In this document: piece by piece, positions 24,125 through 51,155 of the stretch
How positions within the stretch are numbered: the first letter of the stretch is position 1
Layout: every line of letters begins with the position of its first letter
DNA from: Macrostomum lignano
Taxonomy: Eukaryota
Length of the DNA stretch: 64,000 nt
Direction of reading: 5' to 3'
Assembly: GCA_002269645.1 (NCBI GenBank)
Contig: NIVC01001849.1
Location: 144,235-208,234 of the forward strand
Translations under genes and position numbers: made by a program
Notes under the pieces: generated by a model
Database searches by the model: none
Told to the model about the DNA's origin: nothing
The model's input: the letters and a program-made list of their open reading frames with translations, nothing else

Positions 24125-27100
24125 ATGCCACGAAAGTGGTGCTCCTGGTCATGGAGCCCGACGCATCAGGAGAGTTCACCGGAGCCGAGCCGAGTTCAAA
24201 CCAGCATCAAGTGCCTTGCAGTCGGAGACAGAGCCGTTGGCAAGTCCTCGCTGTTACTTACTTTAGCTCACGAAGGAGCAAGGCTGGTTTTTTTAATCAA
24301 ACAGAACTCATCAACCATTTTGGAACGAACAAGGAAGCTCTTCTTGCTGGATATAGGGTGCTTCGAAGGAGACTCAAACAGACAGGTGAACATTGACTAC
24401 TCCCAAGCAGATGTGCTTCTCGTATGTTTCTCTCTAGTCGGACAGGGCAGCTTTGAGAGCGTACAGACAAGGTGGCACGCTGAGTTGAGTCAACGCTGTC
24501 CAGAAATTCCAATCATTCTTGTTGGAACGAAGCTGGACCTGCGAAACGACAGCTCAACAATCGTCAGGTTAAAGGAGAGGGATCAGGCACCCATAACAAA
24601 TCAGCAGGGCATGACAATGGCAAAGAAAATCAATGCAATGAGTTACCTTGAGTGCTCCGCCCTGACTTGTGATGGTCTGACTGAAGTCATCGGCGCAATC
24701 GTAAGAAGCAGTGTTTCGGGATCTCCAAGAGATTCAGTCACAGTGGCACGGAAACCAAATCACAGAAGGTACGCTTGTCAATAAAAATTTAATTTTAAAG
24801 TATATTCTTCGATAGTAAAAGTCATGGAATCAGTAAATATTAGTAAATCTCATATTAACTGACGCGAATACTTGCATTGTAAACGTGATAGAGTGGCCAT
24901 CACATAGTTACATGTGAAAAGCGTGATTCAACTAGACAGATATGTAAAGATATTCCAAGAGAAAAGTTTCCTAAGACATAAACATCTCCAGGACCTTAGC
25001 TGAGGTTATCAGTACAAAGTTGCCATTGGTACGGTATTGCACCTGATGAATTGTTTCTTCTCAGTGATTTCTTCAAGTTACTCTGGAAACTTGCACGACT
25101 GATTTCTAGGAGGCTTCTCGGCATCAGGTCTTTCTTCCGCTCGATAAGGGAATCCTGGAAAATGAACCCAGTGTTCAAACTAAGTTATGATTTGTAAGTA
25201 ATACTCGAAGTCTTCATAAAAAATTTGCAGGCCCCTGCTATTGCCAGATATCCGCAATTGACTTTGTGCTTTCAATTTATAGTTCCATAATCGATGCACC
25301 AACTGAAGATTGCGACAATGATGACTGTGTATACGATTTACTTCAGGATGCAGCGACGGGTATTTTGACTGCGTGAGTAATCCAACCATTTTTCCTCAGA
25401 TGCAGAGCCACAGTTCAACGTTGAAAATAATCAAACACATTTTTAGTTCGGAAGCTGAACCCTGTTCGGAATACGAGATTGTTGATTCGGACGATGAATC
25501 GAACGGAAACAACGCTAGTTCGAACAATCGACACTATGAGAAGACCGAACTCAAGCACGCAGTTCAAACTGATTTTCTACAGCAGAGGGATGACCTTGCG
25601 GAGAACAGTGCTAATGGGTGAGCAGGAAATCCTTTGTAGACAGAGCCGCTGTAGCTCGTACTTCCCCCTGTAGTGTGTGTGTATTTAGGGATCAACGGAC
25701 TGGGCATAACTGTTTGTCACTGTGCTAGCTTCTGGCGTACTTGCCATGCAGAGCACAAAGCCCTAAGCTAACTAAGTTGTACAATGTAAACGCACATTTT
25801 TACAGCGAGGAGGAAAGAAAACATGCTGATTTTACGTCAACAAAAATGGACAAAGTATCGGAGCAAGAGTTAAGGCAACCAACAACAAAGCGGAAGATCG
25901 TGCTGATCGGTGACGAAGGCGTGGGCAAAACCTGTCTGATTTTGTCCCATGCCAAACGCATCTGTCCTGCTGACTATGTTCCTACTGAAGCTGACGATTG
26001 TATTCCTAGCTCGGATGGCAGCGCCGACCTCGGTCTGTGGGACCTCAGCGGCTCGAGGGACTTCGACAGAGTGCGGCCAGAGAGCTACGGACTGGCGGGC
26101 GTCATCCTCATCTGCTTTTCCATAGCCAGTCCATCCACTTTCGACAGCGTGCTTAACCGCTGGCGGCCGGAGGTGGCTCGCTACTGCCCTGACGCCCCAA
26201 TTATTTTGGTTGGGACCAAAGCAGACTTGCGGACTGACCCAGTCGCTCTGAAGAGGTTGCGACGCATGAGACTAGTCCCGATAGCTCCAACCCAGGGCGA
26301 TGACCTGGCCAAGGAGATCGGCGCTGTCGCCTATCTGGAGTGCTCGGCCTTGCATCGAATCGGAATAGACGATCTCTTTAAAAAGGCTTCACAGGTTTCT
26401 TTCAGGCAAGTTTGGTTTTCGATGATTTTTATGAATTTCTTTGCAAGTCATTCTGAAATCTAAAAAAATCAAGAATAAGCTAGAGTTGATTGGTTTGATG
26501 TTATTACGATTTCACAGAATTTTCTATATTTTCTATATCCATACACTAAAATGGTCTTTTCCGCTAGAAATATTTAATCAGGGTTCAGCTTTGAGTTTTA
26601 AAGTTTGTCTTAATCTCTGTAAGTCTTTGAACATTTGAGTTCTTAAATCTTAAGTAATCGATACTGAATCGGCCGATATAAATATCCACGACAGACAGGC
26701 AGATGATTGAATTTGAATTTTTCTGTGGTTGAATTGCACTACTGCTCAATGTGTTATGTTCGCTGGGATAAAAAAAGTGCTTTCAGACATACAAGCCATA
26801 AATCTCATATTCTATCGATACTAGATTTATTCTTAGTGTGATTATTATAGCTTTTTCCAGCCATTTTAGGGCATTTGCGCATTTAAATTAATCCTTAAAG
26901 ATGCTTCCCAAAGTAATGGAGCTTTTGTCTTTGGTACCAAGGCTGGCATGGCACTGCAGCATTAATATTGGTCCAACAGGCATCAATTTGGTCCATAGCG
27001 GCTATGAAACCCTATCACGAGTTTGTAATGCAATTTTTCACTTTACCAGTGCAAGGTGACGTCAAAAATGCAATCTGCTCAACTATAACAAAGAGCATTT

Positions 27101-28388
27101 TAGTATGGTCGAAACGTTGCTTTAATCAGAAGCCCTTGATGTTCGTTCGATAGCCTAGCGTATGGCCAACGATTCAAGACCAGATTTTGCACCTCTTCAG
27201 CAGTTGCAAATGAAGCATTGTTTTCGTCCACATTGCTTGATAGTCATGCCTAAATGAAAATCTAGGGGTGAAACTATAGAGCTATGGACCGGATTGATGC
27301 TTGTTGGACCAAATTAAATGCAGCTGTGCCATCCTTGCTACCATAGACAAAAGCTCCGTTACATTGGTAAGCATATCTTGGATTCAATTAAATGCGTAAA
27401 AGCCCAAATGAGCTGCAAAAAGCTTTATCATATTTAATCAGTATCGACTACGAACGTGAAAGAGATAAGAGATCCGCGGCACAAACACTCTTGTTTTATG
27501 CGTTTATGGATTCACTTAAGTTGATAATTAGCTAAAGCTTTCCTCTCAAATTTACCATCCAGACGGGATGACGTCTACGCACATGTATACAGCGAAGCGA
27601 AGTCCTCTCACCCTAGAGTTCCGCGGCCGCCGCCTCTGCCGCCGCATCCGAATGAATTCTACAAGGTCACATCGCCGCAGGGTCTTTGTCTTGTTGTGAA
27701 TATTTACAAATACGATAAAGGCTTCAATCTCGAAAATCGACTTGGATCCGATTTAGATGTAAAGCGAGTAGAGAGCGTCTTTCGCAAGCTCAACTTTCAG
27801 GTGACAGTGCTGGAGAATCTGAAGTGTCACGAGATTGCAAAGCTCATGAGCAAAATAGCAATCTCCGAAGAAACTGAGTCACACGGCTGCTTCTTCTGCT
27901 TTTTGATGGCCCACGGCTCAAACGGACGCATCTACGGAAGCGATGGCGAGTCTTTGGAGATTCGCTCGATCCTGGAGAGATTTCGCGCCAACCAGTGCTT
28001 CAATCTGCGTCACAAGCCGAAGGCGTTCTTCATCCAGGCATGCCGTGGAAGCGACAATGAGTCCGAGAAAGATACTCAGGTGGACAAGTTTGTCTCTGAC
28101 AACACGGGATTGCACTGTCCCTTGGACAGCGATTTCCTGTTGTGCTACGCCACAACCGAGGGCTACTCTGCCCTTCGGGACAAAGAAGGTGGTTCACCAT
28201 TCGTGCAGACCCTGTGCGATGTACTTGAAGAGCGACACTCAAGTGAGCACCTGGTGGATATCATGACTAACGTAAACTGTCGGCTCAAGGAGAACCCGAT
28301 CAAAGAGAAGAGCCAAAATTTGTATTCCGTAACCGAGACTGTCACCAGGTTGTCCAAGAAGTTTTTCCTTGATCCAACTCTCGCATGA
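24125..28388 (+). CDS. Predicted fusion gene 1: pseudo-Rho domain + atypical Rho domain + caspase, ~746 aa; join(24125..24768,25447..25617,25806..26405,27563..28388)
   Basis: Donors AG|GTACGC (24769), GG|GTGAGC (25618), CAG|GCAAGT (26406, GC type). Acceptors TTTTTAG (25446), TTTTTACAG (25805), TTTACCATCCAG (27562). All phase 2; total 2241 nt, open. Caspase motifs YKVTSPQGLCLVVN, ENRLGSDLD, FLMAHG, IQACRG (28035-28049), DFLLCYAT..SALR..GSPFVQ. Start codon uncertain. Confidence 0.7.
26847..27426. mobile_element. MITE-like element with ~150-bp imperfect terminal inverted repeats, in gene 1 intron 3
   Basis: TAGCTTTTT.CAGC..TTT.AGGGC...GGAGCTTTTGTCT...TGGTCCAACA.GCATCAAT.TGGTCCATAGC is inverted at ~27278-27426. 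Confidence 0.75.
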
Positions 28389-31544: not shown

Positions 31545-31896
31545 AGGTCACAAGGATTGTCTTAGCTATAGCGCTTCTCAAAGAATAAAGTTAGAATTAG
31601 AAATTTAATTTTAGAAACTTCGATCGTTTCACCCTATGCCACTCTTTACCGAACTATTCGTTCGGGTTCTTATTCACACTCCGTGCTTTTAGAAGAAGAC
31701 GTAAGTTTTCTGACAAGCAAACCTGGCTAGCTCCTATATAACCTATGAATCAACATTTCATTTGCATGCTACTACTCGTATAGTGTCTAAGCACTGGGAG
31801 GCCGCCTCGCCTTACTTGCCCAGCTACCTTACGCGGGCACCGTTGAGACAAAATCAGATCCTTGCCGATGGGGTATTTAAATTAACTTGACAACAG

Positions 31897-32450
31897 GTAC
31901 CATCAGGTGACATCCCCAGGGCCTAGAGCTTTGGTTATTAATCTCTGTGAATTCAATCAGAATGAATAGAGACGGCTCACAGACATGAGAGCCCGTGTGC
32001 ACGAGAATTTGAAGTGCAACTAGATTGCTGAACTACGTAAAAACTGCTTCGCACTCATCTCTAAGATTAAAGATCACGGATGCTTTTTCTGCTTCATAAT
32101 GGCTCACAGAATGCACGATCGGATCCATGGTAGTGACGGCGAGCCTCTAGAAATTCAATCCATCCTGGGCCGCTACTAAGTTAGAGAACGTACTTGGTCG
32201 ATCCGAACTACTCGATGGACAGCGAATTCTTGATGTGCTACACCAACACTGAGGACTACATAGCTTTCAGAGATGAGATCAATTTATTCAGGCCATGTGC
32301 GACCTCGAGAAGGCGCATGGAAGAGCGCATATCGGACATGCGGACTCATGTAAATAAGCGCCTCAAACCCGGACTGCGGCAGGAGGCAGCAAAGTTTTTG
32401 CAGTCTCGCAGACGGCGTTGCAGTCATCAAAGAAATGCTTTCTACATGTA
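31897..32450 (+). pseudogene. Caspase pseudogene, paralogue of the fused caspases
   Basis: YHQVTSPGPRALVINL...*; DHGCFFCFIMAHR..RIHGSDGEPLEIQ; MDSEFLMCYTNTEDYIAFRD. Has stops and frameshifts, and the QACRG segment is absent. Confidence 0.8.
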
Positions 32451-32764
32451 AATCCAACCCCTGGCTGATCTTGATGGCAGTCTCCAGTGACTCGACTCTA
32501 TTAAGTTTAAAAGCAGACTTAATTAATAAAAGCAGACTCATGTAATTCAACTCCGAAGCAATGGGTCAAGAGTTTTAATTCTAATGGTGCTCTTAATTAA
32601 AATGTTTAATTTTTAGTTTTTCCTCGGAAAGTTTTTTTTCAGAAAACTACTCGACATTCTTCGTGACGGTTGTAGACTTGCTCACTTAGTATGCTACTCG
32701 TACGAGTAGTAACTTGCAGTATATTTTCTTTGATACATAATTCTGTAAAACATAGGGGGGACTT

Positions 32765-32847: not shown

Positions 32848-33243
32848 TTTTCTGCCCTCTTTTATTCTTAAACATAAATAGAAATTTCAAGCACACAAAC
32901 ATTTACCTGCTGGCCTTGATGGATGTACAGATACTATTTTGTCTACTTCTCTACTTCGCCCAATGCAGTGAAAACTCAGAGGCCCTCTTTTCATTCTTCT
33001 GCCTTTTTTGTAGTTCGCCTGCTTACCCGTCTAGACGTACACGGTGCTATCAGAATCGCGGAATTGTGCTGTCTTCTGTTTTGTAAGAGCTAAATATAAC
33101 TCCGGCCCTTTCTATCCAAATATGTACACCCGAAACATCACGGATGAGAAATAACGATGTAGAACGTTATTTAGTGCCTCCTTCGACTTGGCAGTTAACC
33201 CAGCTCTGCAAAAAAACTTGTCGGAAGTTTGATAGCAGCAATC

Positions 33244-35593
33244 ATGAGAATGATCAAATGTGTTATTGTTGGCGACTCTACCGCTGGCAAGACCTGCATG
33301 ATTGAGACCTACGTAAATGGCTCAATGCCAGACACGTTTATTCCAACAATTTACAAAACGTACTCAGCTCGGCTGCCCATGGAATCGGAGTCTATCGAAC
33401 TGGCGCTGACAGACACGGGAGGCAGTGAAGGCTACGACACTCTCAGACCAGTCGCCTATCCGCAGACAGACGTGTTTATCATCTGCCTTGACTTGACCAA
33501 GTCAGCCGAACTTGTGCTTGGCAATGTGCGTACAAAGTGGTACCCGGAGTTGAGCCACCACTGCCCCTCAGCACGCATTATTTTGGTTGGAACAAAGCTT
33601 GACATGCGAACAGGTTTGAAAATAAGCGAGACCAAGGAAGAAGATGCTGAGAAAAACCTTACAGCTGAGCAAGCCAACGAATTCGTCAAGGAAATCAATG
33701 CGGCAAAGTACATGGAATGCTCCTCAATTACTCAGCAAGGATTAAAAGAAGTGTTCGAAGAGGCCGCTCGCTTAGTTCTTAACTCTTCTGACGCTCGCAA
33801 TGGCAAAAAGAAGAAAAATGAACACCACGGGTGCGTAAAGATAGTTTCAGCCACTGTTTGAGTTCACTTGTAGGTTAAAAATGTTGTACATGTGTATCAA
33901 GAATCTTTTATAAAGGGCCAACAGAAGTGAAAGTTATCAGCAAAGAGCTTTGAAAAATAATCAAAGCTCTTTAGATTCTGGCTTGGGTACTTCTCGAGTT
34001 TTTTCACAGATTTAAAATGCACGAGCTATCAAAATGCGTGAGCGAGAACGCTTTCAAAAACAAGATCGCCACACACTACTTAACAACTTGCAATAATTTC
34101 AGAGATTCCAAGAAAGTCGTTTCGTTCCTTCATTCGCTATCGTCGTCGAGAAGGAACTCTGAAACGTCTATCAAGTAATTTGCTGGAGCACACTTTATTC
34201 CTGAAATATATTCATTAAAATATTTTGCAACAAGATTTCCAATGAACCCTTGCAGGCAAAGTGTTCTTTCCGATGGTGGAACCAAAGATTCCGAGACCGA
34301 AACTTCACCTGATGAGCCGAGCATTAAGTAAATACTCTAGCTCCTCTTCTGGAGTAATTTTTGTTTTAAAATTCTGTTAGAATTCTTTTTAATTAGCCAC
34401 TAATACGAGTTTTTTGCACGAGCTTATTTAAAAAAACTTGCAGATCTCCATCATCGATTAAAGCCTTTTTCCGCGGTTTACGCCCTGGGAAAACATACTC
34501 GTACAATATCGCATCGTACGACTGTTTCTTAAATTTGAAATTATTCAGAATAATAGCATTCCTTGCCAAAACCAGAGCAGTGGAAAATGTATCCCATATG
34601 CTCATATTTTTTAGACAACAGAAGTCGCACGATAAGAAAACCAAAGCTTCGAGTGAAACTTGCGAGCCAGCGGACACTTCATCCGCTGAAGTTTTGGATC
34701 AGCCCCAACAGCCTGCTTCGAGGTAAGCTTTTTCTAACTGGAACTCAAGCTATGAAGGATTGCAGACACAGTTATCTGTCTACGGGAATGCGTAATCTTC
34801 CCTCTTAACAATGTCTTGCAGTACACAAGAAGCCGTGAGTCCCGAGCTCAGCGAAGACGAGCAGCCGACATCCGAAACAGAAAGTGACGACGAAAGCTCG
34901 GACACGGAGTCCGCCAGTGCTCAGCGAGAGCCAGTCTCGGAAAACCTCAGAGAGCCTAGTTCTCGAGTTGATTATCCGGAAACTATTGTCGTGTTTCGAA
35001 CCGCCGAATCAAAGACGAAGAGTGACACAATAACATTAAAAGTCGTCATAGTTGGAGATGAAGCGGTTGGCAAGACCAGTCTGCTGACCGCATTCGCAGA
35101 GGACCAGTGTCCTCAGGAGTATGTTCCCACAGAGACCGACGACTGCTTTGCCGTGGAGGGTTCACTGGCTGGAAGCCAACTGTGTCTCCGCTTGTGGGAC
35201 GTGAGCTGTGCGGAGTCCTTTGACCGCTTAAGGCCTCTGCGGTATCGCCAATCAGATGTGTTTATCATCTGCTTCTCCCTCATCAATTCTGCTAGTTTCG
35301 AGAATGTACGGGCCAAGTGGTACCCGGAAGTGAGCCGTCATTGTCCTGAAAAGCCATTTATCCTGGTCGGAACGAATTCCGATCTGCGCGATGACCCAGA
35401 GACCATCGACAAGCTGGAGGAAAGGAATCTCGTTCCAATCAGCGTGACTCAGGGCGAGCAGTTGGCTAAAGAGATCGGTGCTGAAGTGTATCTAGAGTGC
35501 TCCGCTCTGTGTAGAACAGCTGTGGAAGACATCTTTAGACAGGCGGTATTGGCTTCCGTGAGAAAAACAGAAAGCAAAAATCATCACGGGTAG
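33244..35593 (+). CDS. Predicted gene 3: tandem double Rho-like GTPase with acidic Ser-rich linker, ~536 aa; join(33244..33830,34103..34174,34256..34327,34615..34722,34822..35593)
   Basis: Donors GG|GTGCGT, AA|GTAATT, AA|GTAAAT, AG|GTAAGC; acceptors ATTTCAG, CTTGCAG, TTTTTTAG, TCTTGCAG. All phase 2; internal exons of 72, 72 and 108 nt are open; total 1611 nt. No CAAX. May continue from GG|GTAGAT at 35590. Confidence 0.7.
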
Positions 35594-37283
35594 ATCGATC
35601 GAAATTGAATACAAGAAACCAACGCACTCATGACAATATGGGCTAAATCTGTATTCAATACAAATCGTGCATGACAACCTCTATTAGCAGTACCATTTTA
35701 AACGCATATTCGGCTCCATATTAAAATGATCCTGAATTCACAGTACCTGCTGTTTTTCGTTCGTACTCTCGTAGCTTTCGATTTCCAGACTCATAAGAAC
35801 TTTAACATAACTTGTAAGCCAATATCATCAGTTGCTTTGGTCCGTCTTTGATGACATTACACCATATGTGCAGACGCTTACGCAGGACCCGTAACTTGAT
35901 AGATACGAGCGTAGATTAATGGATTAGGTCGTAGTAACTGCGCACTGTAATTGCACATGTGTTGTTGAGCAGCTCCCGTTCTTAGATTACCGTTGATTCT
36001 TAACGTACTCATTTTTTCACATTCACATAGTTCCCTTGATATTCAGTTGTAAATAGGCTTGCTATTTTTCTGCCATATTTTCACCTTAAAACTATCAGTA
36101 GCACACAGATTCTTTGCTTCTTTTGTTATCATGCAGTGTGTTGAGGTCTCATCAAATTCAAATGCAGCGCCCCATTTTTAGATTTATCCATATTTTCTGC
36201 GCCTTCCTACTTTAAGTGACTTTTTGAGCAAAATATCTCCTTTAAGCAGAAATTAAAGGAGACTAAATAAAATATTTTTTGTTACCCGCTACTCTCTGAT
36301 AGCTGCCGCACGTGTTTCTTTAGACCTAAAGAAATGAGCTTTATTGAAAACCAGGCCTGAATTTTAGTGAAGATTACATGGCATACGAGGGTACTAAGCA
36401 TACGACGTATGTCACTGTATGTTAAATTTAATGTCGAATGCATGTAAAAGTCGACAAGTAAAGCAAGTCTGCATCTTCAATAAAGCGTCTCACAAACGAC
36501 AGTCAATCATGCTTTGCAGTCGGGGTCGCCATCCATTAATTGTCAGATTAAAAATGGCACCGAAACGGCGTTTAAAAGTGCGTGAGAAGGTCGCAAAAAG
36601 AGGTATCTTATGAAAGACACTCTTTGAGTACAAGGTTGGCGCTTACAGCGTTATCAGAGTGCTTGCATGAGAGGCTGGGTGCTGGCGGAATATACGAAGT
36701 AGACGGAGTAAGGCAAATACGAGCCATAGCTCTCTGTTGTCTACTCTCTCTACTCTTGGCTCCAAGGTTGCTTGGTCGTATTGGAGAGGAGAGTTGCACT
36801 CAGCAGCATCACCGTCACGTCTTCAGCGTAAGCCAGGCTCGAGCTTCTACTCTGCAATATGCAAACAGATTTTTTTCGAAACCCTTTTTCAAAGAATTTT
36901 TTTTTGTTTATTCGCTCCAGCTCAAAATGTGCTACAAAATGTGGTGCTTGAGTCAGATTCAATGGAGCTGGCCTGAAGAACAATGCGTTTCTGATATCAA
37001 TGATATTGTGCTCAAATGAATACCCCTCTTCCCTCCCCCTCCCCAGCATTAGGGCCAGTGTTTTATGCTTGCAATAAAGACAGTTTAAACTGAAAGATGG
37101 ACGCTTCATGAACAATAACGAACGTTAGTTTCCGAGGGCATTTTATCCACTAGACTGCAGAGCAAAGAATTACCATCTTAAATTGAATGCAATCTTGAAA
37201 ATGAGACGGGACTTTGCCCAGTTGTTTTTTAGGTATACAGCGTTGATAGACAGCCTGGCGCTAGCAGCTGACAGAGCAGCAGC

Positions 37284-40200
37284 ATGAGTTCAAACAAGAT
37301 CAATTGCCTCGCCATCGGCGACGAAGCGGTTGGCAAGTCCTGCCTGATTGACTGCCAATTAGGCATAGAATTCCAGCGCATGCACATCCCCACTGACTGC
37401 TTTAAGAAACACAGCATGGAGAGCACTTTAGAGGGACACACATTTCAGATCACACTGTGGGACTCGCCCAGTAAGGACGAATGCTTTGTCGACATGCCGA
37501 GTTACCCAAAGGCGAATGTTGTGCTTCTCTGCTTTGCCATCGATTGCCGAGCGAGCTATGAAAACGTGAGAAGAAAATGGTTTAAAAGGTGCAGAAAGCT
37601 CTTCCACAAGGCGTCCTTTATTCTGGTTGGAACCAAGCGGGACCTGCGAGACAGTTCGACATCGATTAGTCAGTTCGAAGGCCGTGATCTGCGAAAAATT
37701 ATCAACGCTGAGACTTACAAAGAGTGCTCCGCTCTGAATCCTGAGAGTGTCCGGGAAGTTTTTGAAGAGATTATTTTCACGAAGTACAATCAGACTTTGT
37801 CAAAAACAAACAAAAGGTACGTGTTCATTTTACTTTTTATTACTTTTCGTCTGATATGCCTTACGCTGAATATTTTACTACGCTCTCCTAATATTCGTTT
37901 CCTTTAAACTTTATTGCAGCAGGGCACTAAGTATTCTCCCGTCAAAAGCCATCTTTTGGAGAAGAACTAAGAGTTCGAACGAGTACAGGTATCTTTTATA
38001 TTAGAATGGCTACGTGTACGAGATGTTCTTGGTCTCGAATCATTTGATTGCGTCTTTGATTCAGAGAGTATCGACCATATCTTATCTGATACTGCGTGAC
38101 AATATTCTCTGTGCAGATTTCACAATTTGCCATTGTAGCATCCTTTAGTCATTGGTGTCTCAAGTTCATCAGTAAATTGCACTGATGACCTTCACGAAAA
38201 TGATAGGAAGAGCAACGCAAAAGCGCGAACAGTCAATACTCTCTTTATCTGTCGCAAACAAAACAGTAAATTAAAATCATTTTCTTAGAAAAAATTAACC
38301 GTGAAAAAATAATCATATTTCCTCAATAGTGCCCAAAAAAACTGATGAATGTGAGTATCTACAACCCGATCCGATTCGAGCGGCGACACGTGATCAAGGA
38401 ATCGAACCGTAAGCTTAAAATTTTTTGGTGTTCAATCTCGACAACTTGTTTAAGTTTGCTCAGTATACTACTAGCATACTACATGTACTCAAAAGCTCCA
38501 GTTGGGTGCGCTGACAAAACAATGCTGTTCTGCTCTGCTTAAAAAAATCTGAAAAAAATTTAAGCTCCCGTTTACTTTCCATCACTCATATGAGAGGCGC
38601 CGCAACTGCGGTATTTATTTACAGACTTATACCTATCAATAGCCAGTAGTAGTTTTCCATTGATTAAAAGAGTTTAAAAGCAAATTTACCAAAGTGGAGT
38701 TCAAAAAAGGCGGAACAGAGTCACCGGAAAACGCGTCTGACTCTCGCGATGCGACCTCCCTCTGGTACCTCATTTGATTAAATGAACACCCACATCAACT
38801 TGGCGCTTGCACTCGTAAATTCTCGTCGTGCTTTTCACACCCTTGTGGGCAACCCCCCCCCCACCCTATAGCACAGAGAGTGCACATGCCTGACAATTAG
38901 AAAGTCAAATTGCGGGCAACCCCCCCCCCTATAGCACAGAGAGTACACATGCCTGGCAATTAGAAAGTCAAATTGCGGGCAACCCCCCCCCCTCCAAGGC
39001 ACGGAGAGTTGCACATGCCTGGCAATTAGAAAGTCAAATTGCGGGCAACCCCCCCTCCAAGGCACGGAGAGTTGCACATGCTTGGCAATTAGAAAGTCAA
39101 ATTGCGGGCAACCCCCCCCCCTCCAAGGCACGGAGAGTTGCACATGCCTGGCAATTAGAAAGTCAAAGGGCCGCTTTACAAATTTGCGTACAGAATGAGT
39201 TCAGGAGTCAGCGGAATCAGAATTGCCTCAGCGCCGGGTTGTGGGACGATTTCGCACATCACATTCCCACGTCACACAAAGCGATGCGTCAGGGTGCCCA
39301 CAGCCCTCCTGCAAATATGAGCGTTCTTCGTTATTTCTAAAAAAAGTCGGTCTTCCCTAGTTGAGGATCCCCCATCAGTTACGGTGCTTGAAAAATGTCG
39401 AAATAGGGTGCCTACGTAGTCTCGCACCCAATGCCTGCTGAATGTCCGGAAGTTTCGCCTAGAAGAAGGCCGTTAAAGTCAGAGACAATAACGAAATTTG
39501 AAGGCTTGGCAAGGCCGCACTGAGTTGCAGCGCTTGCTCGTAATTTCTGCCTAGGGGGTGCACTGAATGCATTCTGAGGGAAAAAATCCGGACCTTCTGG
39601 CAAAATCATTGAATATCTTTGAATATCATTGTTGAATATCATTATTATTGAATGTCATTGAAATCTCGGACGATTTCGAAGGCTAGTGACATGAATCTTC
39701 TTTGACCATGTGCGAGAAAAATCTAGCCATCCTTGTGAATTTTCACTGTAGCAAAAATGTCTGGCTGGATCCTTAACAGAAATTGTTTTTTACTCTTCCT
39801 GTTATTAAACATAAAATTCGTTTTCTTCAAATGAAATATTTCTAGAGATTTTGATTATCCTTTGGCCGGAGCAACTGGAGGCGCCGATCCAGACATCTAT
39901 ACGTGTCCGTCTATAGATTTATACAACCGGCATGGCTACATGAAGGCGGATGTTCAGGCAACAAATCCGTGAGAAAAAGAAATTTTATTTTACGAGCTAC
40001 ATTTGACTACTCGCAATAAAACATAATAGGGGCGCTTCACAAGAAATTTCACAACTTTGAAAACCCGTGCTAGTCACTCCCGCAATCCAAAATTTAAAAT
40101 AACTTCGCGATATGAAAATTTGAGCTTGTGAAGTTTCACTCTTCAAAAAAGTAACAGATAAGACTTTTCCAGGATGTGAAATTTCAAACTGGCGAATGCG

Positions 40201-43200
40201 ACCCCGAAATTCTTAAAATGTACAAATACGAGCTAGCTTGACTAATTACATGACTTACGTAGAGGCAGAATGGGCATACCTCACTGAGGATTTTTTCCTG
40301 GAGGCAGCGATGTCTGGCAACACAGTAACGTCCCGAGGGCCATATGTCCTTGCGGTTGAGTTGGACAGGGCCTGCGGAGGGTGGGGGAATGACAGGAGAT
40401 AGGCACGCGGGATTTCCGGCAGTTGGGGTGTTAGCCCACCTCTCCCTGTGCTGCCACCCACTGATTGATCCGGGTGGTGACAACGTACAAATAGCTACTT
40501 GAAAGCCTAATTTAGGTCAAATCTTTCTCTTCAGCAAACAGGAAACTCTTCAGCTTAGATTTCTGCACTTTTGAGTATCACTTGAAGCCAAAGTGTATCT
40601 TGAATAAATCGATCAGCTATCGATATCTTGAAATAATTTCTGATATACAAGAGAAAATATTCAATCTATACTACTTATAGTACACTTTTAATATTTTTTG
40701 TTTCGCATCTGGGGTCTTTACTCAAACCATCAAGCCGACGTGATAAAAGCACTAAAACGGTTATTTGCAGGACTAATGCGGGCTGCTACAACAGGGAGGC
40801 TACAAATGAAGAATATGTGTACGACTATATTGATGATGAGCTATCGGAATCTAACAAACAAGACACAATTCAACAAAGTCCGTTCAAGACTGACGACCTT
40901 GGTCAGAGGTAGGCATGCAAGATTCTCTTAGTGTGTCTTTCTGGATATATTTGCAATGCTCTTCCTTGAAATTCCCTCCACAGAGCACCTTAGATAGTTA
41001 ATACGAGCGTATGTAGTGCACAAGTTTAATAAACAGTTTAGTCACAATTTCAACTGTCACAGTTTAGATTTGCAAACCAAAAACTGGCCCGCGAAACAAT
41101 AAGGACTGTGAGACCAAAGATCCCTTACGAGACCGGAGAGGAGAATGAGTAAAGAGTGGAGAGGGGAGATGAGAGATGGAAGTAAAGAAAGGAGAGGATG
41201 GGAGAGAGGATAGAGGGGAGAGGGGAGATGAGAAAGGAGAAGAGAAAATGAAAAGAGAGCTGAGAAGAGACAAACCTTGAGCGGATGGGATTGCGATTGT
41301 GAAGTTTCAAAGGACTGGAGGGGCGGAAAGAGAGGCTTTGAGGGCCGGAGTTTGACAACCTCTGGGATAAGACCAAGCTTTGACAATTGGCTTATTTTTG
41401 TTGCAATTTCTCTGTACGAGCTAAGCTATTAGTCCAACGACCTTATGTAGATTATTGCTAATTTATTGTGAATTCTGAATTATAAAGCCTATTATTGAGC
41501 CTTCATCGAAGAATATTCAACCTAGTTGTAGGGCTTTACACGATTAATCAACTTCAGTTAACTGATAATTGAACGCAACAATATAACTTAAACATTTCTA
41601 CACCTTTGAAGGCCTCTACCACAAGCCCAGGAAATACCTCTGCCACCACCACAGCTTCTGCCTCCAGTACCTGACAGGTACATATTTTTTGCATGAAACT
41701 TCTAAATCAATGATAAAAGCGTTATGATTTTATCCTAGTTTTCAACTAAAAATCAACAAACATCGAATCGTTTTAGAGCGTTAAAAAAGAGACAGGTTCA
41801 AATGAAAGCAGAGCAAGAGGAACGGAACAAAAACATAGCTGCCGTTGTCCCTGCGTTGAAACTAAAAATCAATGTCGTTGGTGACGAGAAGGTCGGCAAA
41901 ACCTGTCTGCTCGTGGCCTATGCTGAAGGACTCTGCCCAGTTGAGTATGTTCCTACTGAGACCGACGACTGCTTATCAAAAGAGGTTCAGGTAGATGGAT
42001 ATACGATTCGCGTTGGCCTGTGGGATAACAGTGGCTCGAGAGACTATGACCGAATGCGGCCGGGAAACTATGAAGGGACAGACGTCGTCCTCATCTGCTT
42101 CTCCATTGCCAGTCCCGCTACCTTTGACAGCGTGCGCACCCGATGGCTTCCAGAGATAGCTCTTCACTGCTCGAACACTCCAATAATTTTGGTTGGGACC
42201 AAGATGGATGCGCTCGACGATAGAGTTGAAATGGAGAAACTGCACAGAAAGCGGCTTGCTCCCATCAGCAGCTTGCAGGCGACAGCTCTGGCCAAAGATA
42301 TTGGCGCTGAATTGTACATTGAGTGCTCGGCTCTGAGAAGATCGGGGCTAGATAGCCTTTTCAAGGCGGCCGTAAGAGCGGCTTTCGAAAAACAAAAGTA
42401 AGATTTTTTAAGCATCTATCTCAAAAAAACTTTGCAACAGCAACAGCTGAAACTATCGTTTTGTTGTTCCTACGCTCGTATTATGGTAAAGTTTCAACGA
42501 TGATGGGGGTTCTTTTGTCCACCATTAGATTTTGCGTCTTGTTTTTACAGAAAAATTCTGGAAGTCGGCTCAATACAAGAAAAGGAAAGCAGCAAAACTG
42601 AAGCCTCAGAGCCTCACGATCAGCTGGATGAGCCTCACCGTGATTTCGACGAGTGTAACGAATTTGCCTCGTAAGTTAACTTGAAATATCCTATTAAAAA
42701 GTATACATGCAATAGATGATCACCGAATCTCACATTTAAACAGTGCTCAAAGTTTCGACTCCAACGACCATAGAGACGTGGAATATGACGTTTGTTCTGG
42801 CCAATCTGAGGGTTTATTTAAGCCCCATAAAGCACAGCCGCCGGTTGTGCCTCCGCATCCGATTCCAAAGCCGCGAGGTATTCGTCGATTAAACTCCAGT
42901 ACTGAGGCACAGTCAGGAGTCATCGAACAAACAGAAGTTTATCCTTCACAGGAACCTACTGGACCCGCTGAACAAACTGAAGTTTATCCTTCACAGGAAC
43001 CTACTGGACCCGCTGAACAAGCTGAAGTTTATCCTTCACAGGAACCTACTGGACCCGCTGAACAAACTGAAGTTTATCCTTCACAGGAACCTACTGGACC
43101 CGCTGAACAAACTGAAGTTTATCCTTCACAGGAACCTACTGGACCCGCTGAACAAACTGAAGTTTATCCTTCACAGGAACCTACTGGACCCGCTGAACAA

Positions 43201-44521
43201 ACTGAAGTTTATCCTTCACAGGAACCTAGAGTTTCGTTCCAAGCTGCGACACAAAAGTTAAACGATCTGAACAGGTGAGCTCTGGGTGCATGCACTCTTT
43301 TACTCTTGCGCTAGACTAAAAAAAATTTTTATGTTCGGATTTTGGCAGTTAGCAAAGCATGGTGTCTGAATTGAGTGAAAGTAGGTGAGCAGGAAGGTGT
43401 CTGACTCTCGTGCCAAGCCAAATTACGAGTGACTTTGGGCTTTTGCGAGAAAATCAAGCTTATCAAATTATTCTTGACAATCTCCGAGGTACAGAGTGTG
43501 TACATGTTTGACGATAAGAAAGTCAGGGTTGCTTACATTGTGTGAGTGTGTGCCTTTGTACGTATCCGTGTGCGTTCGCGTGCTCAGGGGTTAGAGGAAT
43601 AGGTATTGCTGTTTACCTTCAGGATTCTTTATTTTGAGGCCTTCATTTTGCAGGGGTACTCAACGGCCCTCTTTGAACTGACTAAAATAACTGCATTTAA
43701 ATAATATCGAAGCTACATTACGACCTACAAAATCGTAATTCAACAATTCCAGACGAAACAAGGAGGCCATTTATCCAGTTACCTCACCTCAGGGCTTCTG
43801 TCTGATCATCAACATAAAAAAATATAGAAATCGCGCGCTATTTGAAGAAAGAATTGGCTCGGAATTAGACGTGGATAGAGTGAAGAGATTGTTTACCAGA
43901 TTAAATTTTATTGTCGAGGTTCACGAAGATCTAACTTGCAATGAACTCGTTCGAATCGTAAGTCTTAAAGCCCTCTCTCCGGACCTTTCTAACCATGGCT
44001 GTTTCGTATGCTTCATCATGGCTCATGGTGACGAATCCTCCATTTACGGCATCGATGGTGAAGCATGGGAGGTCCAGGCCATCGCTAAACGGTTTCGAGG
44101 AAACGAGTGCACCGGACTGTGTAACAAGCCGAAACTCTTCTTCATTCAGGCATGCCGAGGAAAGGGTTGCGAAACCATTCCAGGTGCATGGGTGGACCAG
44201 CAAGTGTCTAATGCATATTACTGCCCGAGGGATAGCGATTTCGTGTTGTGCTTCGCCACTCCAAGCGGCCAGGCTTCTCTAAGAAACCCTACAGAAGGGT
44301 CGCCATACGTGCAGACAGTGTGCGATGTGATTGAAGAGATGCACAAGACCGAGCACCTGCTCGACATGCTGACTATTGCCAACGACCGTCTCAAGAAAAA
44401 CCCAGTACTAAGAGATGGGAACAGGTTATTCGTCGTGTCGGAGACGTTGACACGATTATCCAAGAAGTGCTTCTTGGACCCCGGACTAGCTTCCGAGTTT
44501 GAGTCGAACACAGAAAAGTAG
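37284..44521 (+). CDS. Predicted fusion gene 2: pseudo-Rho domain + atypical Rho domain + repeat linker + caspase, ~948 aa; join(37284..37816,37920..37988,40771..40908,41612..41677,41777..42397,42551..42670,42744..43274,43753..44521)
   Basis: Seven GT-AG introns, all phase 2 (GTACGT, GTATCT, GTAGGC, GTACAT, GTAAGA, GTAAGT, GTGAGC). Internal exons of 69, 138, 66, 621, 120 and 531 nt are all open; total 2847 nt. An in-frame TGA upstream of ATG 37284 marks the start. Caspase motifs IYPVTSPQGFCLIIN, EERIGSELD, FIMAHG, IQACRG (44147-44161), SLR..GSPYVQ. Confidence 0.8.
38835..39167. repeat. ~63-66-bp tandem repeat (~5 copies), intronic
   Basis: GCACATGCCTGGCAATTAGAAAGTCAAATTGCGGGCAAC(C)n..GCAC(G/A)GAGAG. 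Confidence 0.9.
40260..40483 (-). mobile_element. Internal fragment of the LINE family seen at 60345-64000
   Basis: Homologous to 60688-60935 (HRERWAN.PTAGNP..LSPV.PPP...CPFC). Confidence 0.85.
41060..41364 (-). mobile_element. Second copy of the hAT-like non-autonomous element
   Basis: Minus strand begins CAGAGGTTGTCAAACTCCGGCCC; GA-rich body; homologous to 18719-19010. Confidence 0.55.
42925..43227 (+). repeat. Coding 45-bp tandem repeat (EQTEVYPSQEPTGPA x ~6.7)
   Basis: Unit GAACAAACTGAAGTTTATCCTTCACAGGAACCTACTGGACCCGCT inside exon 42744-43274. Confidence 0.95.
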
Positions 44522-45838: not shown

Positions 45839-46737
45839 ATGGCAGCACTTAATGACGCTATAGGTTTATTAGCAGAGGAGCTTAGGAACAGGCTAGAACT
45901 AGGGCCTATGAGGCATGTAAAGATCCAAAAGTACACTCCCAGCCAGGATGTACGAATTTGGTTGACTGCATTCGATCAAAGGTGTGATCAGGAAGGAATA
46001 GATCAGGAGCACAGGAAAACTGAACTTCTAGCTAACCTAGATCTATCGACTGCGTTTGCAGCAGTGCAGCGATTAAATTTACCCGAGGATTTGACGTATG
46101 AGGAATTTAAGGAGAGATTGGTGGAAGATTTGGCCGGATTGGTAGCTCATCTGAGTGCAGAGAAGAGTTTAGAGGTAGGATGCAGGGTAGAAACGAGGCA
46201 ACCGACGTGTTCGCCGATGCTTTGATCGAACTAGCAGCTAGGGCGTTCCCAAATATGAACGCAGAACAGCGTGAAGAGGAAGTAATCGAGCAATTTATCA
46301 AGGGAGTAAGAATTTCCTCCGATACCCGGGAGAAACTCATTTTTGCTCAGCCCACTAGCCTGCAGGAGGCCAGACGCATGCTTAGGAGAATAGAAGCAGC
46401 CTGGCATATGTCGCATAAGAACGGTGTCAGAGTCGTGAGAGACGAAGATGATGAGAAGAGCAAGTTAGAAAAGCTAATTAAGCAGCAGAAATCTGAGCTC
46501 GAAGAGCAGAAGAAGCTAATTCAGGAACTGCAAGCTGAAAAGCAGCAGCCGCCAGTTACTCAGACTAGGCCGCAATACTATCAGCCAAGAGTTCAGGCGT
46601 TCCAGCCACAGCTTCGCCCGCTGATGCAGCAGCAGATAAGGAGGCAGATCCCGTGGAAGCCAACACAGAATGTAGTGCGACCTGGCTTTAACAACCAGAG
46701 TCGATTCCCTGCCCGCAACCCCAATCAGGGAAACTAG
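45839..46737 (+). CDS. gag: Gypsy gag (one frameshift near 46130)
   Basis: ORFs 45839..46225 and 46180..46737: capsid-like LTYEEFKERL, F..QGRNE...F...L.ELA..AFP, EQFIKG; coiled-coil and Q/P-rich tail. Confidence 0.8.
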
Positions 46738-46874
46738 GATTCGAGGGTCGATATTCGAGGCCACGTCCCTCTAGGAAACCCCAAAGCGAAGCTCAGGCCT
46801 CTCATTTCTCCCGCAAACCCGTTTTCAACCCACTCCCTGGAGGATGGCGACAAGTCCCATTTTCCAGGAATTCA

Positions 46875-49800
46875 ATGCGTAATGCACCAATGCGTAATGC
46901 ACCAACGCGTAATGCACCCATGTATAGAGCACCAATGCGTAATGCACCTGTAAACAGCGCGTCTCCCATCGCGCTATCTCCTAATATGTTTGAGTTATTG
47001 GCGTCAGAGCCCAGTGAGTCAGATGCAAAAGCATCAGCATCCGAGTTGACAAAGTCCCCAGTGACTAAGCCAGCAAATGCAAAGCAGAAGGCGAGAAAAT
47101 CTCGCAAAGCGAAATATCGAGAAGCTAAGAAAGCAGCTGAGAAAGCAAAAGTTGATTTGATAAGCGAGAAAAGTAGCGAAGCAATTGTCTTTGGAGACGT
47201 TGAAGGTCAAGAAATTGACTTCTTGCTTGACACCGGAGCCGGAAACTGCTTCCTGAGCAAGTCAGTATGGTCCAAGGTGATCAAGACAGAGCAAATCCGA
47301 GAAACCAATAAGAGAGTTACCACATTTGATGGTTCCTCAGTGCAGCTAGAAGGAGAAGCTAGTGTGTCTGTAACCTTTGGAGATATTCAAATTAATACCA
47401 GCTTTTTGCTGTGCAGCTATGAATGTGATAACATTCTTGGCATGGACTTCTTCCTTTCCCACTGTAAGAGCATTGATTTAGACAATGGCATGCTTGTACT
47501 AAAAAGAGGCCTCTGTGTGCCTATGCAGTACACTCGCCAAGCAGTTAGAATTTGCCGAGTTTATACTCGAGAAAAGGCAGTAGTACCTGCTAATAGTGCA
47601 TTGAGAGTTCCCATTAGGCTAGCGAAAGACCATGAGCTCAATCATGGCACTCCTATGACAGTAGAAGTGATCGGAGAAGGCGTGAGAGCCAAGGAATTGA
47701 CAGTAGAGATGGTTCCGACATTGGTCACCATGAGAGACGGCAGTGCCATCGTGGAGATCGTGAATCGACACTCTGTCGACGTGAGACTGCCGAAGTCGAC
47801 ATTGATTGGTCTGGCCAAGCCCATGAGAGCCAAGGACCTCGTCTACTGGTCAGCATCGCCTTCCGCCGCCGAATCAGCTTCGCCGACAATTGCCGAAGAT
47901 GCCACAACCCGCCGGACGTGTCAATCAAGCTCAGGCAACTGAAGATGCTTGGGTGAGCGAAATTAGTATTGGTGCCAATTTATCTGAAAGTCAGCGAAAA
48001 GCAGTAATTGATCTCGTGAGAGAGAATAGAGAAGCATTTTCCCAGCATGATTTAGACATGGGATTGACTCATCTAGTCACTCATGAAATTTCCCTGAAGA
48101 CGAGACCCCTGTTAGAATCCCTACCCGCCGCATCCCCCCTCATCTCCAAAAGCAAGTCGACGCCCAGCTAGACGACATGCTAGCCAAGAATCTCATTCGC
48201 CCCTGCTATTCTACCTATTCTACCCCATTAGTCATTGTGCCAAAGAAGGATGGCACCATCCGAATAGTGAGTGATTTCCGAGTGCTCAACTCTAGAGTTA
48301 ACTATTTTCCCTATCCCCTCCCCAATATTCAAGAAACTTTTTCTAATCTTACTGGCAGTAGGTACTTTAGTAGTTTAGATCTTAACTCAGGTTATTGGCA
48401 AGTGCCTATAAAGGAAGAGCATAAGTTCATGACCGCGTTCTCTACTTTGACGCGAGGACAGTTTGAGTACCAGGTTATGGCGCAAGGGTTATCCAACGCG
48501 CCCGGTACATTTCAAAGACTGATGAACTTAGTGCTAGCCGGAATCCAGCATAAGTTTGCAATGTCGTATATTGACGATATAGTTACTTACTCGAAGCAAT
48601 TTGAGGAGCATTTATCCCATCTAAGAGAGGTGTTTCAGAGATTGATCACCGCAGGTTTAAAGTTGAGAGCGAAAAAGTGCAACTTATTTCACTCTGAACT
48701 CAAGTATCTAGGCCATGTGATAGGTAGAGATGGCATTCGCACAGACGAAGCCAAGATTGAAGCCATTAGAACCTGGCCAAAGCCAAAGGAAGTAAAGGAA
48801 TTGAGAAGCTTTTAGGATTGTGCAATTACTACAGCAGATTTGTCAAAAATTATGCTGAAGTAGCGCATCCTCTTTTCCAACTGACTCGTAAGGGAGTTCA
48901 AAACTTCCAAGCAAAATGGACAGCAAAGCATGATGAAGCGTTTGAGCTATTGAAAACCCGTATGATGAGTACTGACGTGTTAGCATACCCTGAGTTCATA
49001 GACAATGAGAAGGTGAAGATGGTTCTCGATGTAGACGCCAGTGATGGACGCATAGGTGCCTGTTTGGGACAAATCCAATCAGACGGTGTCGAGAGACCAA
49101 TCGCCTACTTTAGTCGCGCTATGAAGGAGTCAGAAAACGCTATCCCATAACTCGCAAGGAGTTGCTAGCTCTAGTAGATGCCATGAGGCATTTCCGCTTC
49201 TATCTAATAGGAAAGAAATTTCTAGCTAGGACCGACCATAAGGCTATACTTTGGTTATTAAGGCAGACAGAAGCCCAGGGCATTTTAGGCAGATGGATTG
49301 AGCGCCTCAACGAGTTTCAATTTGAAATCGAGCATAGGAGTGGCGCGAAACATTCAAATGCCGATAGCTTGTCCCGAAGGCCAGCCGAGGCTGCCCAGCC
49401 AGATTGTAAAGCCAATGAGAAGGCGGAAGCCGAGAAAAGAGTCAAGAGATAAGCAAAATCACCAGCAAAGGCGTAAGAGCCGAAGTGAACCAAGAGATAA
49501 GAACTGATAAAGAGGAGTTTATCCCCAGCGAACGCGTGTGTGCAAAGCAGAACCAGAATGGGAAGGCTAAGGACAGCATAAGCGATCTGACCCAGCCCCC
49601 ACTGAGCTGAGAGAAGGAGAGACCAACCCCCCTGAGCCACAGAGGAATAAAATAGTCTCTGGTGAGAAGAGTGTAAGGATTGACAGTGTGAAAACACAGA
49701 GCTCCTGCATTATGCAATCGAGCAGAGTCACCCCACAATCTGAGCACAGTGAGGAGTATGGCACGCTGAAGGTTGGAGCATTATTAGTTGACTTCCTACC

Positions 49801-51155
49801 CAACCCCCTGCGGAGAGAGCAGATCGTTAATGCCCAGCGAGAAGACCCCAATATTAGTACTTTGCTAAATTGCAAACTCGAAGGAAAGGAACCCCCCGCC
49901 GAGCAAAAGAGCATTAGCTCAGAATTAAGGCAGTTGAGCAAATTTTACGAGAAAATGAAAATCGAAAGCGATATGCTTGTTATTGAAGAAGAAGGAGTAA
50001 GCAAAATTGTGTTGCCAGTGTCACTGGACAAATTAGTGCTGGCTGATCTACACGATAGCCCACTAGCAGGACACTTGGGCCGTGACAAGACAGTGCAAAG
50101 AGTTAGGGAGAGATTTTGGAGACCCGGCTTAGTGACAGCCATTGAGAAGTACATATCTGAGTGTATTCCGTGTTTGGAAAGCAAAAGAGGATGCCCTGTT
50201 CAGGCTCCAGTGCAGTCATTCCCAGTCAACGAGGCATTCCACCGCCTGCATATCGATATCATAGGCCCCATCTCGAAAGAAAGCAAGAGAGGCCATAGAT
50301 ATGTGCTGACTGTAATTGATAGTACTACCCGCTACCCATTCGCGTTCCCGATCCGTAATCAGAAGTCTGATACCGTGATCAAGATCTTACAGGAGCGAAT
50401 TTTCAGTGAATATGGTCAATGCCATTGGATACATACTGACAATGGGAAAACCTTCACAAGCAGACAGTTTAAAGCGTTTTGCGATACAATGTCAAGCACA
50501 CCTGTACCACCCCGTACCATGCCCAAAGTAATGGCTTGGTAGAGAGGTTTAACAAGCAAGTGAAATCCATCATTACCTGTTTAATTAAAAGGACCATAGC
50601 AATTGGGATTTAATGATCCCAGCAGCGCTTGTTGCAGTGCGCACTAGTGTGAATCAAACCACAGGCTATTCACCCCATTTCCTGTTATTCGGAAGGGAGC
50701 CAGTTTTGCCACTAGACAGTCAAATTCGCCAGCCAAATCAGTACTCAGGCTATCCAGCCTATGTCGCAGATCATGCCGAAAGGCTAGAAATTGCCAGAAA
50801 AATCGTGAGAGATAAGCTCGAGAAAGTTGCTGATAATAGAAAGAATATTGCTGAAACAGCCAAGCAGCCTAAGGAAGTACCAGTAGGGAGTTTAGCGCTA
50901 ATAAATAACCCGCAGTTAGACAATGAGGAGTCTAACAAATTTCACAGAAAGAAGAGAGCCGCCTATAGAGTGATTGAACAGATCTCAGATGTAGTGTTTA
51001 GAGTGCAGAGAGAGGAAGATGGTGAGCTTGTAGGGAATAAATTATTAGTGCATAGGGACAATTTAACACTAGTTCCTAATTCGACCGCGAATTGCCAATT
51101 AAGGGAAGCCAGCAGGAGAGCACCGGAAGAAAAATCAGTCAAGGAGGGAACCTAA
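46875..51155 (+). CDS. pol: Gypsy pol: protease, RT, RNase H, integrase (several frameshifts)
   Basis: FLLDTGA; PLVIVPKKDG, YWQV, QGLSNAPGTFQR, YIDD; DVDASDG, ARTDHKA; H-H-C-C zinc motif, LHIDIIGP, IHTDNG, GLVERFN. Confidence 0.92.

Follow-up and report, generated by a model that had tools for sequence, protein, structure and literature searches.

In a 64,000-nucleotide stretch of the Macrostomum lignano genome (assembly GCA_002269645.1, contig NIVC01001849.1, positions 144,235 to 208,234 of the forward strand; hereafter the window), a gene at 37284-44521, here called gene 2, joins two tandem Rho-like GTPase domains to a C-terminal caspase domain. We consider it probable that this is a real caspase gene, specific to the M. 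lignano lineage, in which a caspase of the ankyrin-repeat (ANK) clade has had its N-terminus swapped for two Rho G domains derived from the surrounding gene cluster, and in which these domains act as a nucleotide-loaded recruitment module. The gene structure, the motifs and the position in the caspase tree are observations, and the nucleotide lock, the recruitment role and the activation by proximity are read by analogy with Rnd and RhoH proteins and with initiator caspases. The presence of Rho-like domains and a caspase in a single gene, as proposed in the first-pass annotation of this DNA, agrees with the GenBank coding sequence (CDS) of a sister copy of the locus (1015 aa) and also with that of a paralogue, gene 1, in the same window (804 aa).

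Gene structure and evidence for a single mRNA

The GenBank CDS of the window locus is PAA63380.1 (BOX15_Mlig000293g2, hypothetical protein, 757 aa), which has Pfam matches to Ras, Roc and Peptidase_C14. The spliced model of GTPase 2, linker and caspase built from the window is 100% identical to it. Over 29940-54521, the window agrees with the contig record at every base. The second member of its 90%-identity cluster, PAA49772.1 (BOX15_Mlig021837g1, 1015 aa), is encoded on NIVC01003792.1, a contig that represents a 99%-identical sister copy of the window region. The Pfam order in PAA49772.1 is Ras, Roc, Ras, Roc and Peptidase_C14, and the protein is laid out as Rho-like GTPase 1, GTPase 2, a linker of seven 15-aa repeats and the caspase. 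Mapped onto the window, PAA49772.1 is divided into ten exons by nine introns, all of them phase 2 with GT-AG boundaries; in the sister copy, every internal exon has a length divisible by 3.

All ten exons lie on the + strand. Exon 1 (37284-37816) contains the start codon and Rho-like GTPase 1, an A-type domain, and equals residues 1-177 of PAA49772.1. Exon 2 (37920-37988; 69 nt, phase 2-2, SRALSILPSKAIFWRRTKSSNEY) has GT-AG edges and corresponds to residues 178-200. Exon 3 (38330-38408) holds a run of seven A at 38335-38341 where the sister copy has six, and exon 4 (39846-39968) holds the ATG at 39940 from which the 757-aa GenBank CDS starts. Exon 5 (40771-40908) encodes an acidic, Tyr-rich linker (EEYVYDYIDDE) and is located within the sole block that diverges between the two copies; exon 6 (41612-41677) encodes a proline-rich linker, PLPPPQLLPPVPDR. 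Rho-like GTPase 2, a B-type, Rac-derived domain recognized by Pfam Ras and by its match to Rac1, is encoded by exon 7 (41777-42397), followed by an acidic linker in exon 8 (42551-42670), which is present in both GenBank models. Exon 9 (42744-43274) begins with a Pro-rich segment, PPVVPPHPIPKPRG, and continues with a tandem repeat, for which Tandem Repeats Finder reports 6.8 copies of 45 bp at 42925-43228; the 15-aa unit is EQTEVYPSQEPTGPA, and its EVYPSQEP core occurs seven times. Finally, exon 10 (43753-44521) contains the whole caspase domain and the stop codon, as defined by Pfam Peptidase_C14 and by alignment to caspase-7 and caspase-8.

The first-pass annotation had joined eight of these exons (1, 2 and 5 to 10) into a 2847-nt frame with a single terminal stop. 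That frame and its seven GT-AG phase-2 introns were reproduced exactly; however, the chain omits exons 3 and 4, and the transcript-derived model has nine introns. Its junction 37988/40771 is unsupported, and the sister-copy model places the two omitted exons in between. An ab initio model in UniProt from an older assembly (A0A1I8GCE2) uses a different exon chain, in which four GTPases are fused.

Regarding the linkers, no Pfam domain beyond Ras/Roc and Peptidase_C14 was found in them or in the 1015-aa protein. Four linker stretches, namely exons 5, 6 and 9 of gene 2 and 27563-27660 of gene 1, contain proline motifs of the PxxPxR type (LPPVPDR, PIPKPR) and acidic Tyr motifs (EEYVYDYIDDE, the sevenfold EVYPSQEP and, in gene 1, DDVYAHVYSE). 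A PP-x-PPHP motif, read by eye, is common to the linkers of both genes. The proline and acidic Tyr motifs suggest docking of the SH3 or phosphotyrosine type.

The GenBank CDSs of assembly Mlig_3_7 come from a filtered, genome-guided transcriptome produced by StringTie/TACO and de novo assembly, with experimentally mapped spliced-leader and poly(A) sites used to cut the transcripts and TransDecoder used to call open reading frames (ORFs) (PMC5730564). Since this annotation is transcript-derived, its exons are defined by RNA and not by ORF maximization. Ras and Peptidase_C14 occur together in three of the transcript-derived CDSs: PAA49772.1 (1015 aa), PAA63380.1 (757 aa) and the 804-aa gene at 24125-28388. 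The linking exons are stop-free and in phase (474 nt in exons 2-6, 651 nt in exons 8-9); at the local base composition, we estimate the probability of this arising by chance as P ~1e-4 for exons 2-6 and ~2e-6 for exons 8-9.

The distribution of start codons also bears on the fusion. In-frame Met residues of the 2847-nt frame are found at 1, 33, 45, 71, 259, 345, 429, 479, 488, 849, 956 and 965, so the Met-free stretch reported in the first-pass annotation extends from residue 488, inside GTPase 2, to residue 849, the M of the MAHG motif. The M. lignano spliced leader has an ATG at its end (PMC8629364). At each of the nine acceptors, this ATG is out of frame and runs into a stop after 2-50 codons. 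Because no Met precedes MAHG and the leader ATG is out of frame at the phase-2 acceptors, a caspase-only product is impossible from these exons. A caspase-only isoform made by spliced-leader trans-splicing, which the first-pass annotation had envisaged at 43753 as the outcome that would speak against the fusion, was thus ruled out at all nine acceptors, 43753 included.

Rho-like GTPase and caspase domains

Both G domains belong to the Ras superfamily and are nearest to Rho/Rac. GTPase 1 (ORF 37284) matches Pfam Ras (PF00071) with E=7e-26 and finds RhoG/Rac1 as its best PDB matches (E ~1e-30); GTPase 2 (ORF 41802) matches the same family with E=1e-34 and Rac1 with E=2e-59. We read the G-domain motifs from an alignment with a canonical Rac of the window. 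The P-loop is GDEAVGKS in GTPase 1 (37317-37340, +) and GDEKVGKT in GTPase 2 (41880-41903, +), with the substitution G12E in each. The G3 motif of GTPase 1 is degenerate (DSPSKD, 37461-37478, +), showing G60S and Q61K with the DxxG glycine gone, and that of GTPase 2 (DNSGSR, 42024-42041, +) keeps Gly60 and shows Q61S. G4 is TKRD in GTPase 1 and TKMD in GTPase 2, and G5 is CSAL in both. Thr35 is present in both domains and Tyr32 also in GTPase 2; the Rho insert is present in GTPase 2 and has been removed from GTPase 1 by an 11-residue deletion. Neither fused domain has a CAAX box, and the stand-alone Rac/Rho neighbours terminate in CDLL, CSVL, CTLL or CGLL. In summary, G1, G4 and G5 are kept in both domains, and the full G1-G5 set with Gly12, DxxG and Gln61 is intact in neither.

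Since Gly12, Gln61 and the CAAX box are absent from both domains, a switch timed by hydrolysis is unlikely. The GTPase switch suggested in the first-pass annotation is therefore not the reading we favour, and GTPase 1 has in addition lost the DxxG glycine and the Rho insert; judged from the motifs, a nucleotide-loaded recruitment module is more likely. The B-type "second" domains of the cluster (ORFs 34811, 25741 and 41802) are 49-56% identical to one another, and the switch-I sequence YVPTE[T/A]DDC is common to all three paralogues, which suggests a conserved, non-canonical partner surface. The three A-type "first" domains have only ~30% mutual identity, with G1, G4 and G5 kept in all.

The caspase ORF (43871) matches Peptidase_C14 (PF00656) with E=2e-37, which places it among the caspases (MEROPS C14A). 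The exon-10 ORF scores 129.6 bits against a gathering cut-off of 21.4, and the full protein scores 153.5 bits. In residue-level alignments, the match to caspase-7 has E=1.6e-36 and that to caspase-8 has E=4.6e-35. In the caspase-7 alignment, the first S1 Arg is located in ERIGSE (43847-43864, +); the catalytic His lies in MAHG (44018-44029, +), the catalytic Cys in QACRG (44147-44161, +) and the second S1 Arg in SLRN (44276-44287, +). The pairs eRiGs/vRnGt, aHG/sHG, QACRG/QACRG and sLRn/sWRs uphold the catalytic and S1 residues assigned earlier from caspase-1. In caspase-1, R179, Q283 and R341 form the Arg/Gln/Arg S1 pocket, which confers Asp specificity. With the dyad and the S1 pocket conserved, the gene 2 caspase looks catalytically competent. 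The intersubunit region contains candidate cleavage Asp residues at WVD-Q (WVDQ, 44189-44200, +) and PRD-S.

M. lignano itself supplies all of the nearest caspase domains, among them ANK caspases, e.g. PAA56209.1 (45% identity), and the ANK-kinase caspase PAA47029.1 (41%). In a neighbour-joining tree, which serves only as a rough distance tree, the caspases of gene 1 and gene 2 are sisters (69/100). With ANK and ANK-kinase caspases, they are nested in a clade composed entirely of M. lignano sequences (100/100), which in turn groups with the cestode ANK caspases (72/100). To follow the architecture as a whole, the 1015-aa protein was run in an exhaustive HMMER search against 1.84 billion cluster representatives, and, of the 150 proteins with the best scores, the ten with the longest multi-stretch hits were examined with Pfam. 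None of these ten combined Ras with Peptidase_C14 outside the query's own cluster. The next-ranked matches were proteins with several Rho domains and no caspase, ordinary Rho proteins and caspases. Word-indexed protein searches were lossy and missed sequences known to be present; the distribution given here rests on HMMER and exact look-ups.

Paralogue, sister copy and alternative explanations

In the GenBank annotation, gene 1 (24125-28388, +) encodes one protein of 804 aa, which has Ras and Peptidase_C14 domains and starts in the first GTPase exon. It is composed of GTPase A (ORF 24104-24784), GTPase B (25741-26463) and a caspase (27696-28388), all on the + strand, and its caspase is 52% identical to that of gene 2. 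A length of 804 aa can be attained only with both GTPase exons. Splice-site enumeration did not recover the exact 804-aa exon chain: the exons drawn between GTPase A and GTPase B are open and phase 2, and many chains fit, none of them uniquely. A truncated second copy of gene 1 is found on NIVC01000686.1. We regard this paralogue as the strongest support for the fused gene.

We also compared the two copies of gene 2. Over 37000-39968 there are zero substitutions between them; they differ only in the lengths of homopolymers and of a C-rich tandem repeat. The latter lies in intron 3 (38843-39167, about five units of ~63-66 bp), and its copy number differs between the two contigs. Length changes in homopolymers and tandem repeats are a typical error of PacBio/Canu assemblies. 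Mlig_3_7 itself was assembled from PacBio data with Canu and polished with Pilon (PMC5730564). With seven A in exon 3, the ten-exon mRNA of the window reads SAQKN and then a stop, i.e. it ends after GTPase 1, and owing to this frameshift the GenBank annotation of the window locus begins at ATG 39940 and covers GTPase 2 and the caspase. With one A deleted from the run, the ORF is 1015 aa long and departs from PAA49772.1 at 9 positions; skipping exon 3 likewise restores the frame. The extra A may reflect a mistake in the assembly, slippage in the very recent past or a genuine lesion. The only block with substitutions between the copies is 39969-41776, in which intron 4 diverges by 8%, exon 5 has 10 substitutions and exons 5-6 together have 8 of 68 amino acids changed; a retroelement-like fragment at ~40180-40500 shows indel differences. 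This block possibly reflects gene conversion from another paralogue or a different haplotype.

If the frameshift were real at the window locus, the functional protein would be the 757-aa form of GTPase 2, linker and caspase, and GTPase 1 would be either a separate short product or a dead upstream ORF. Translation of the 757-aa form would then begin at Met 39940, possibly on an mRNA that had received the spliced leader at the exon-4 acceptor. We regard this alternative as unlikely. In its favour, the seventh A produces a stop, the GenBank CDS begins at 39940, and a spliced leader on the exon-4 acceptor would leave only short upstream ORFs, so that Met 39940 would be usable. Against these points, the copies differ upstream of 39969 solely in homopolymer and repeat lengths, which is the typical type of assembly error, and skipping of exon 3 would put the frame back. 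It is very unlikely, in our judgement, that the whole fusion is an annotation artefact, in which read-through or polycistronic precursors span neighbouring genes of the cluster and the mature GTPases and caspase are separate. Some 7% of the assembled M. lignano transcripts are multi-gene precursors (PMC5730564), transcriptional units were split only where spliced-leader or poly(A) evidence existed, and identical copies have been annotated inconsistently. However, the cis-spliced linking exons are open and in frame over nine phase-2 introns, and the caspase exon itself lacks a start codon, with the leader ATG out of frame at every acceptor. The paralogue, at ~50% identity, moreover retains the fused arrangement as one 804-aa CDS, which counts against both an artefact and a neutral fusion.

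Such a neutral origin, i.e. a young fusion that arose as a by-product when a genome of recent polyploidy underwent tandem duplication and exon shuffling, and that is transcribed, unselected and decaying, appears the least probable of the readings considered here. The architecture was found in M. lignano alone within the scope of the HMMER search, a caspase pseudogene lies nearby, one copy is frameshifted and GTPase 1 is strongly degenerate; yet two paralogues that are only ~50% identical retain their ORFs, the caspase active site and G1/G4/G5, and two intact paralogues so diverged are hard to explain without purifying selection. An integrated-decoy immune sensor is also improbable, if a little less so. 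Here the Rho-like domains would be bait for pathogen toxins or effectors that modify Rho GTPases, and being bound or modified by these would release or oligomerize the caspase and kill the cell, as a one-protein analogue of the pyrin/RhoA guard system. The evidence for it is circumstantial: the cluster is expanding in tandem and varies in copy number, with a caspase pseudogene among its members; the A-type G domains diverge fast, to ~30% identity between paralogues; GTPase 2 has lost the hydrolysis residues yet retains Tyr32 and Thr35, at which toxins commonly act; and the sister caspases bear other swapped, sensor-like prodomains (ANK and ANK-kinase). On the other hand, switch I of the B-type domains departs from Rac at the effector positions F37 and Y40 and is not a faithful mimic, and Gln61, another common toxin target, is absent.

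The surrounding cluster contains further Rac/Rho and caspase sequences. Between genes 1 and 2, at 33244-35593 (+; ORFs 33229-33861 and 34811-35593), lies a tandem-GTPase gene that lacks a caspase and corresponds to 3486-5835 of the sister-copy sequence. Its annotated product is 244 aa in the window contig and 560 aa, with a pair of Ras domains, on the sister contig, with identical DNA over 33100-35700, and exon reconstruction did not reproduce the 244-aa model. The caspase pseudogene (31892-32459, +) lies between gene 1 and this tandem-GTPase gene. Its identity to the caspases of genes 1 and 2 is 34-40%; it contains in-frame stops, MAHG is replaced by MAHR, and the segment around QACRG is missing. 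At 4524-22700, both strands carry Rac/Rho genes that have CAAX boxes and, for the most part, no introns; this array includes a ~5-kb unit present three times, with identical ORFs at 11168/16215 and 8430/13477 and near-identical ORFs at 7649, 12609 and 17656. Directly 3' of the gene 2 caspase, the window has a 9.5-kb insertion relative to the sister contig (44885-54374), which carries a Gypsy-type long terminal repeat retroelement with gag-like, aspartyl protease, reverse transcriptase and integrase ORFs (45839-51155). Further features are a TNP-like transposase ORF of 545 aa (55714-57351, +), a LINE-type reverse transcriptase/RNase H element (60775-63599, -) and a ribosomal protein L10/uL16 exon (2116-2520, +).

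Proposed mechanism and comparison with known systems

The reading we prefer, a genuine Rho-caspase gene, can be set out as a sequence of events. On the simplest history, an ANK-type caspase would have landed in or beside the Rac/Rho tandem array, gained a pair of G-domain exons through symmetric phase-2 exons and then been duplicated as a unit. The full product would be the 1015-aa, ten-exon form, with the window copy as assembled encoding only the 757-aa form. The G domains would hold nucleotide through the P-loop, Thr35 and the NKxD-type and SAx motifs, and with Gly12, Gln61 and the prenylation box lost they probably would not cycle by hydrolysis. Permanently nucleotide-loaded, as in Rnd or RhoH, they may serve in recruitment or oligomerization and stand in for the CARD, DED or ankyrin region of other long-prodomain caspases. 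Partner binding or dimerization of the G domains would bring caspase zymogens together, and zymogen dimerization would lead to autocleavage at an intersubunit Asp (e.g. WVD-Q) and then to Asp-specific proteolysis.

Several points weigh against this proposal. The mechanism is inferred from sequence and from transcript-derived gene models. GTPase 1, with its DxxG glycine lost, may bind no nucleotide, and given the exon-3 frameshift it may not be part of the caspase protein at the window locus. The two copies are identical outside 39969-41776, introns included, so their comparison allows no inference on constraint on GTPase 1. By sequence, the caspase domain lies at about the same distance from effector caspase-7 as from initiator caspase-8, and activation of the initiator type is presumptive. 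Transcript models on the duplicated loci are also inconsistent, as illustrated by the 244-aa and 560-aa versions of the upstream tandem-GTPase gene on identical DNA.

Regarding novelty, literature searches on GTPase-prodomain caspases, the accessions and the locus tags gave no description of this architecture, in line with the first-pass annotation; the proteins are, however, already deposited in GenBank and UniProt as uncharacterized or hypothetical. A 2024 survey of lophotrochozoan caspases (Krasovec et al., PMC11463336) describes ANK caspases, which it states to be restricted to parasitic flatworms, and one M. lignano caspase with a kinase prodomain, and it reports no further unexpected prodomain in platyhelminths. 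The earlier premise that animal caspases normally carry CARD/DED prodomains or short peptides is thus too narrow for flatworms, where ANK and kinase prodomains exist (PMC11463336). Because the proteins are deposited and non-death-fold caspase prodomains are now known in flatworms, the novelty claimed at first is reduced. Several ankyrin-repeat caspases occur in the free-living M. lignano (PAA56209.1, PAA46841.1 and PAA63849.1), at odds with the parasite-only statement of the survey. The survey (PMC11463336) missed the Rho-prodomain class as well as the ANK caspases of a free-living flatworm. As far as we found, the Rho-caspase architecture is deposited yet undescribed, a lineage-specific variant in a tractable model.

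A paired small-GTPase prodomain would add a different input logic to caspases, namely nucleotide- or effector-dependent recruitment. To our knowledge, caspase activation is understood almost entirely via death-fold adaptors (CARD, DED). The finding also strengthens an emerging picture in which flatworm caspases repeatedly swap prodomains: ankyrin, kinase and now Rho. If the decoy explanation were true, gene 2 would encode a guard in a single polypeptide, with cell death as the answer to an attack on Rho; taken with its ANK and ANK-kinase sisters, it would suggest that a free-living flatworm has a modular immune repertoire of caspases whose sensors are swapped. The Rho-caspase idea is testable, since M. 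lignano is open to transgenesis and RNA interference and since caspases matter to its regeneration and cell turnover.

We compared gene 2 with systems in which a Rho protein, a G domain or a long prodomain is linked to a catalytic output. The pyrin inflammasome that guards RhoA likewise links the state of a Rho GTPase to caspase activation; the analogy is speculative, and there the components are separate proteins and the Rho is a genuine host GTPase. ROCO proteins (Roc-COR; DAPK1, LRRK2), in which a Ras-like G domain is coupled to an effector domain related to cell death, resemble gene 2 in the concept of a G domain that governs an attached catalytic output domain in one polypeptide. Unlike in these proteins, the G domains of gene 2 are clearly of the Rho family and the output is a caspase and not a kinase. 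Membership of gene 2 in the ROCO family was rejected, as the Pfam Roc matches are weak and secondary to Ras and no COR domain is present.

The atypical, GTPase-deficient Rho proteins Rnd1-3, RhoH and RhoBTB share with gene 2 Rho/Rac-derived G domains substituted at the Gly12 and Gln61 positions. In Rnd and RhoH, substitutions at these positions abolish hydrolysis and result in constitutive GTP loading. In contrast to the atypical Rho proteins, the gene 2 domains are arranged in tandem inside a protease, lack a CAAX box and are nearest to Rac1/RhoG rather than to Rnd or RhoH, and GTPase 1 additionally lacks the DxxG glycine and the Rho insert. The death-fold initiators (caspase-8 and -10 with DED, caspase-9 and -2 with CARD) have in common with gene 2 a long prodomain, a caspase domain that is 30-36% identical and, presumably, the logic of recruitment followed by proximity; no CARD or DED match to Pfam was found in the gene 2 protein. 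The closest relatives are the flatworm ANK caspases and the M. lignano ANK-kinase caspase, whose caspase domains (45% and 41% identical) share the signatures YPVT-PQG-CLIINI and LSKK-LDP with gene 2. The ANK caspases likewise have a long, non-death-fold N-terminal region, and the gene 2 caspase falls in their clade. No ankyrin match was obtained in the full protein or its linkers even at E<=1, nor was any kinase domain. Unlike the ANK caspases, therefore, gene 2 carries two Rho G domains and repeat-rich linkers in front of its caspase, in place of ankyrin repeats or a kinase.

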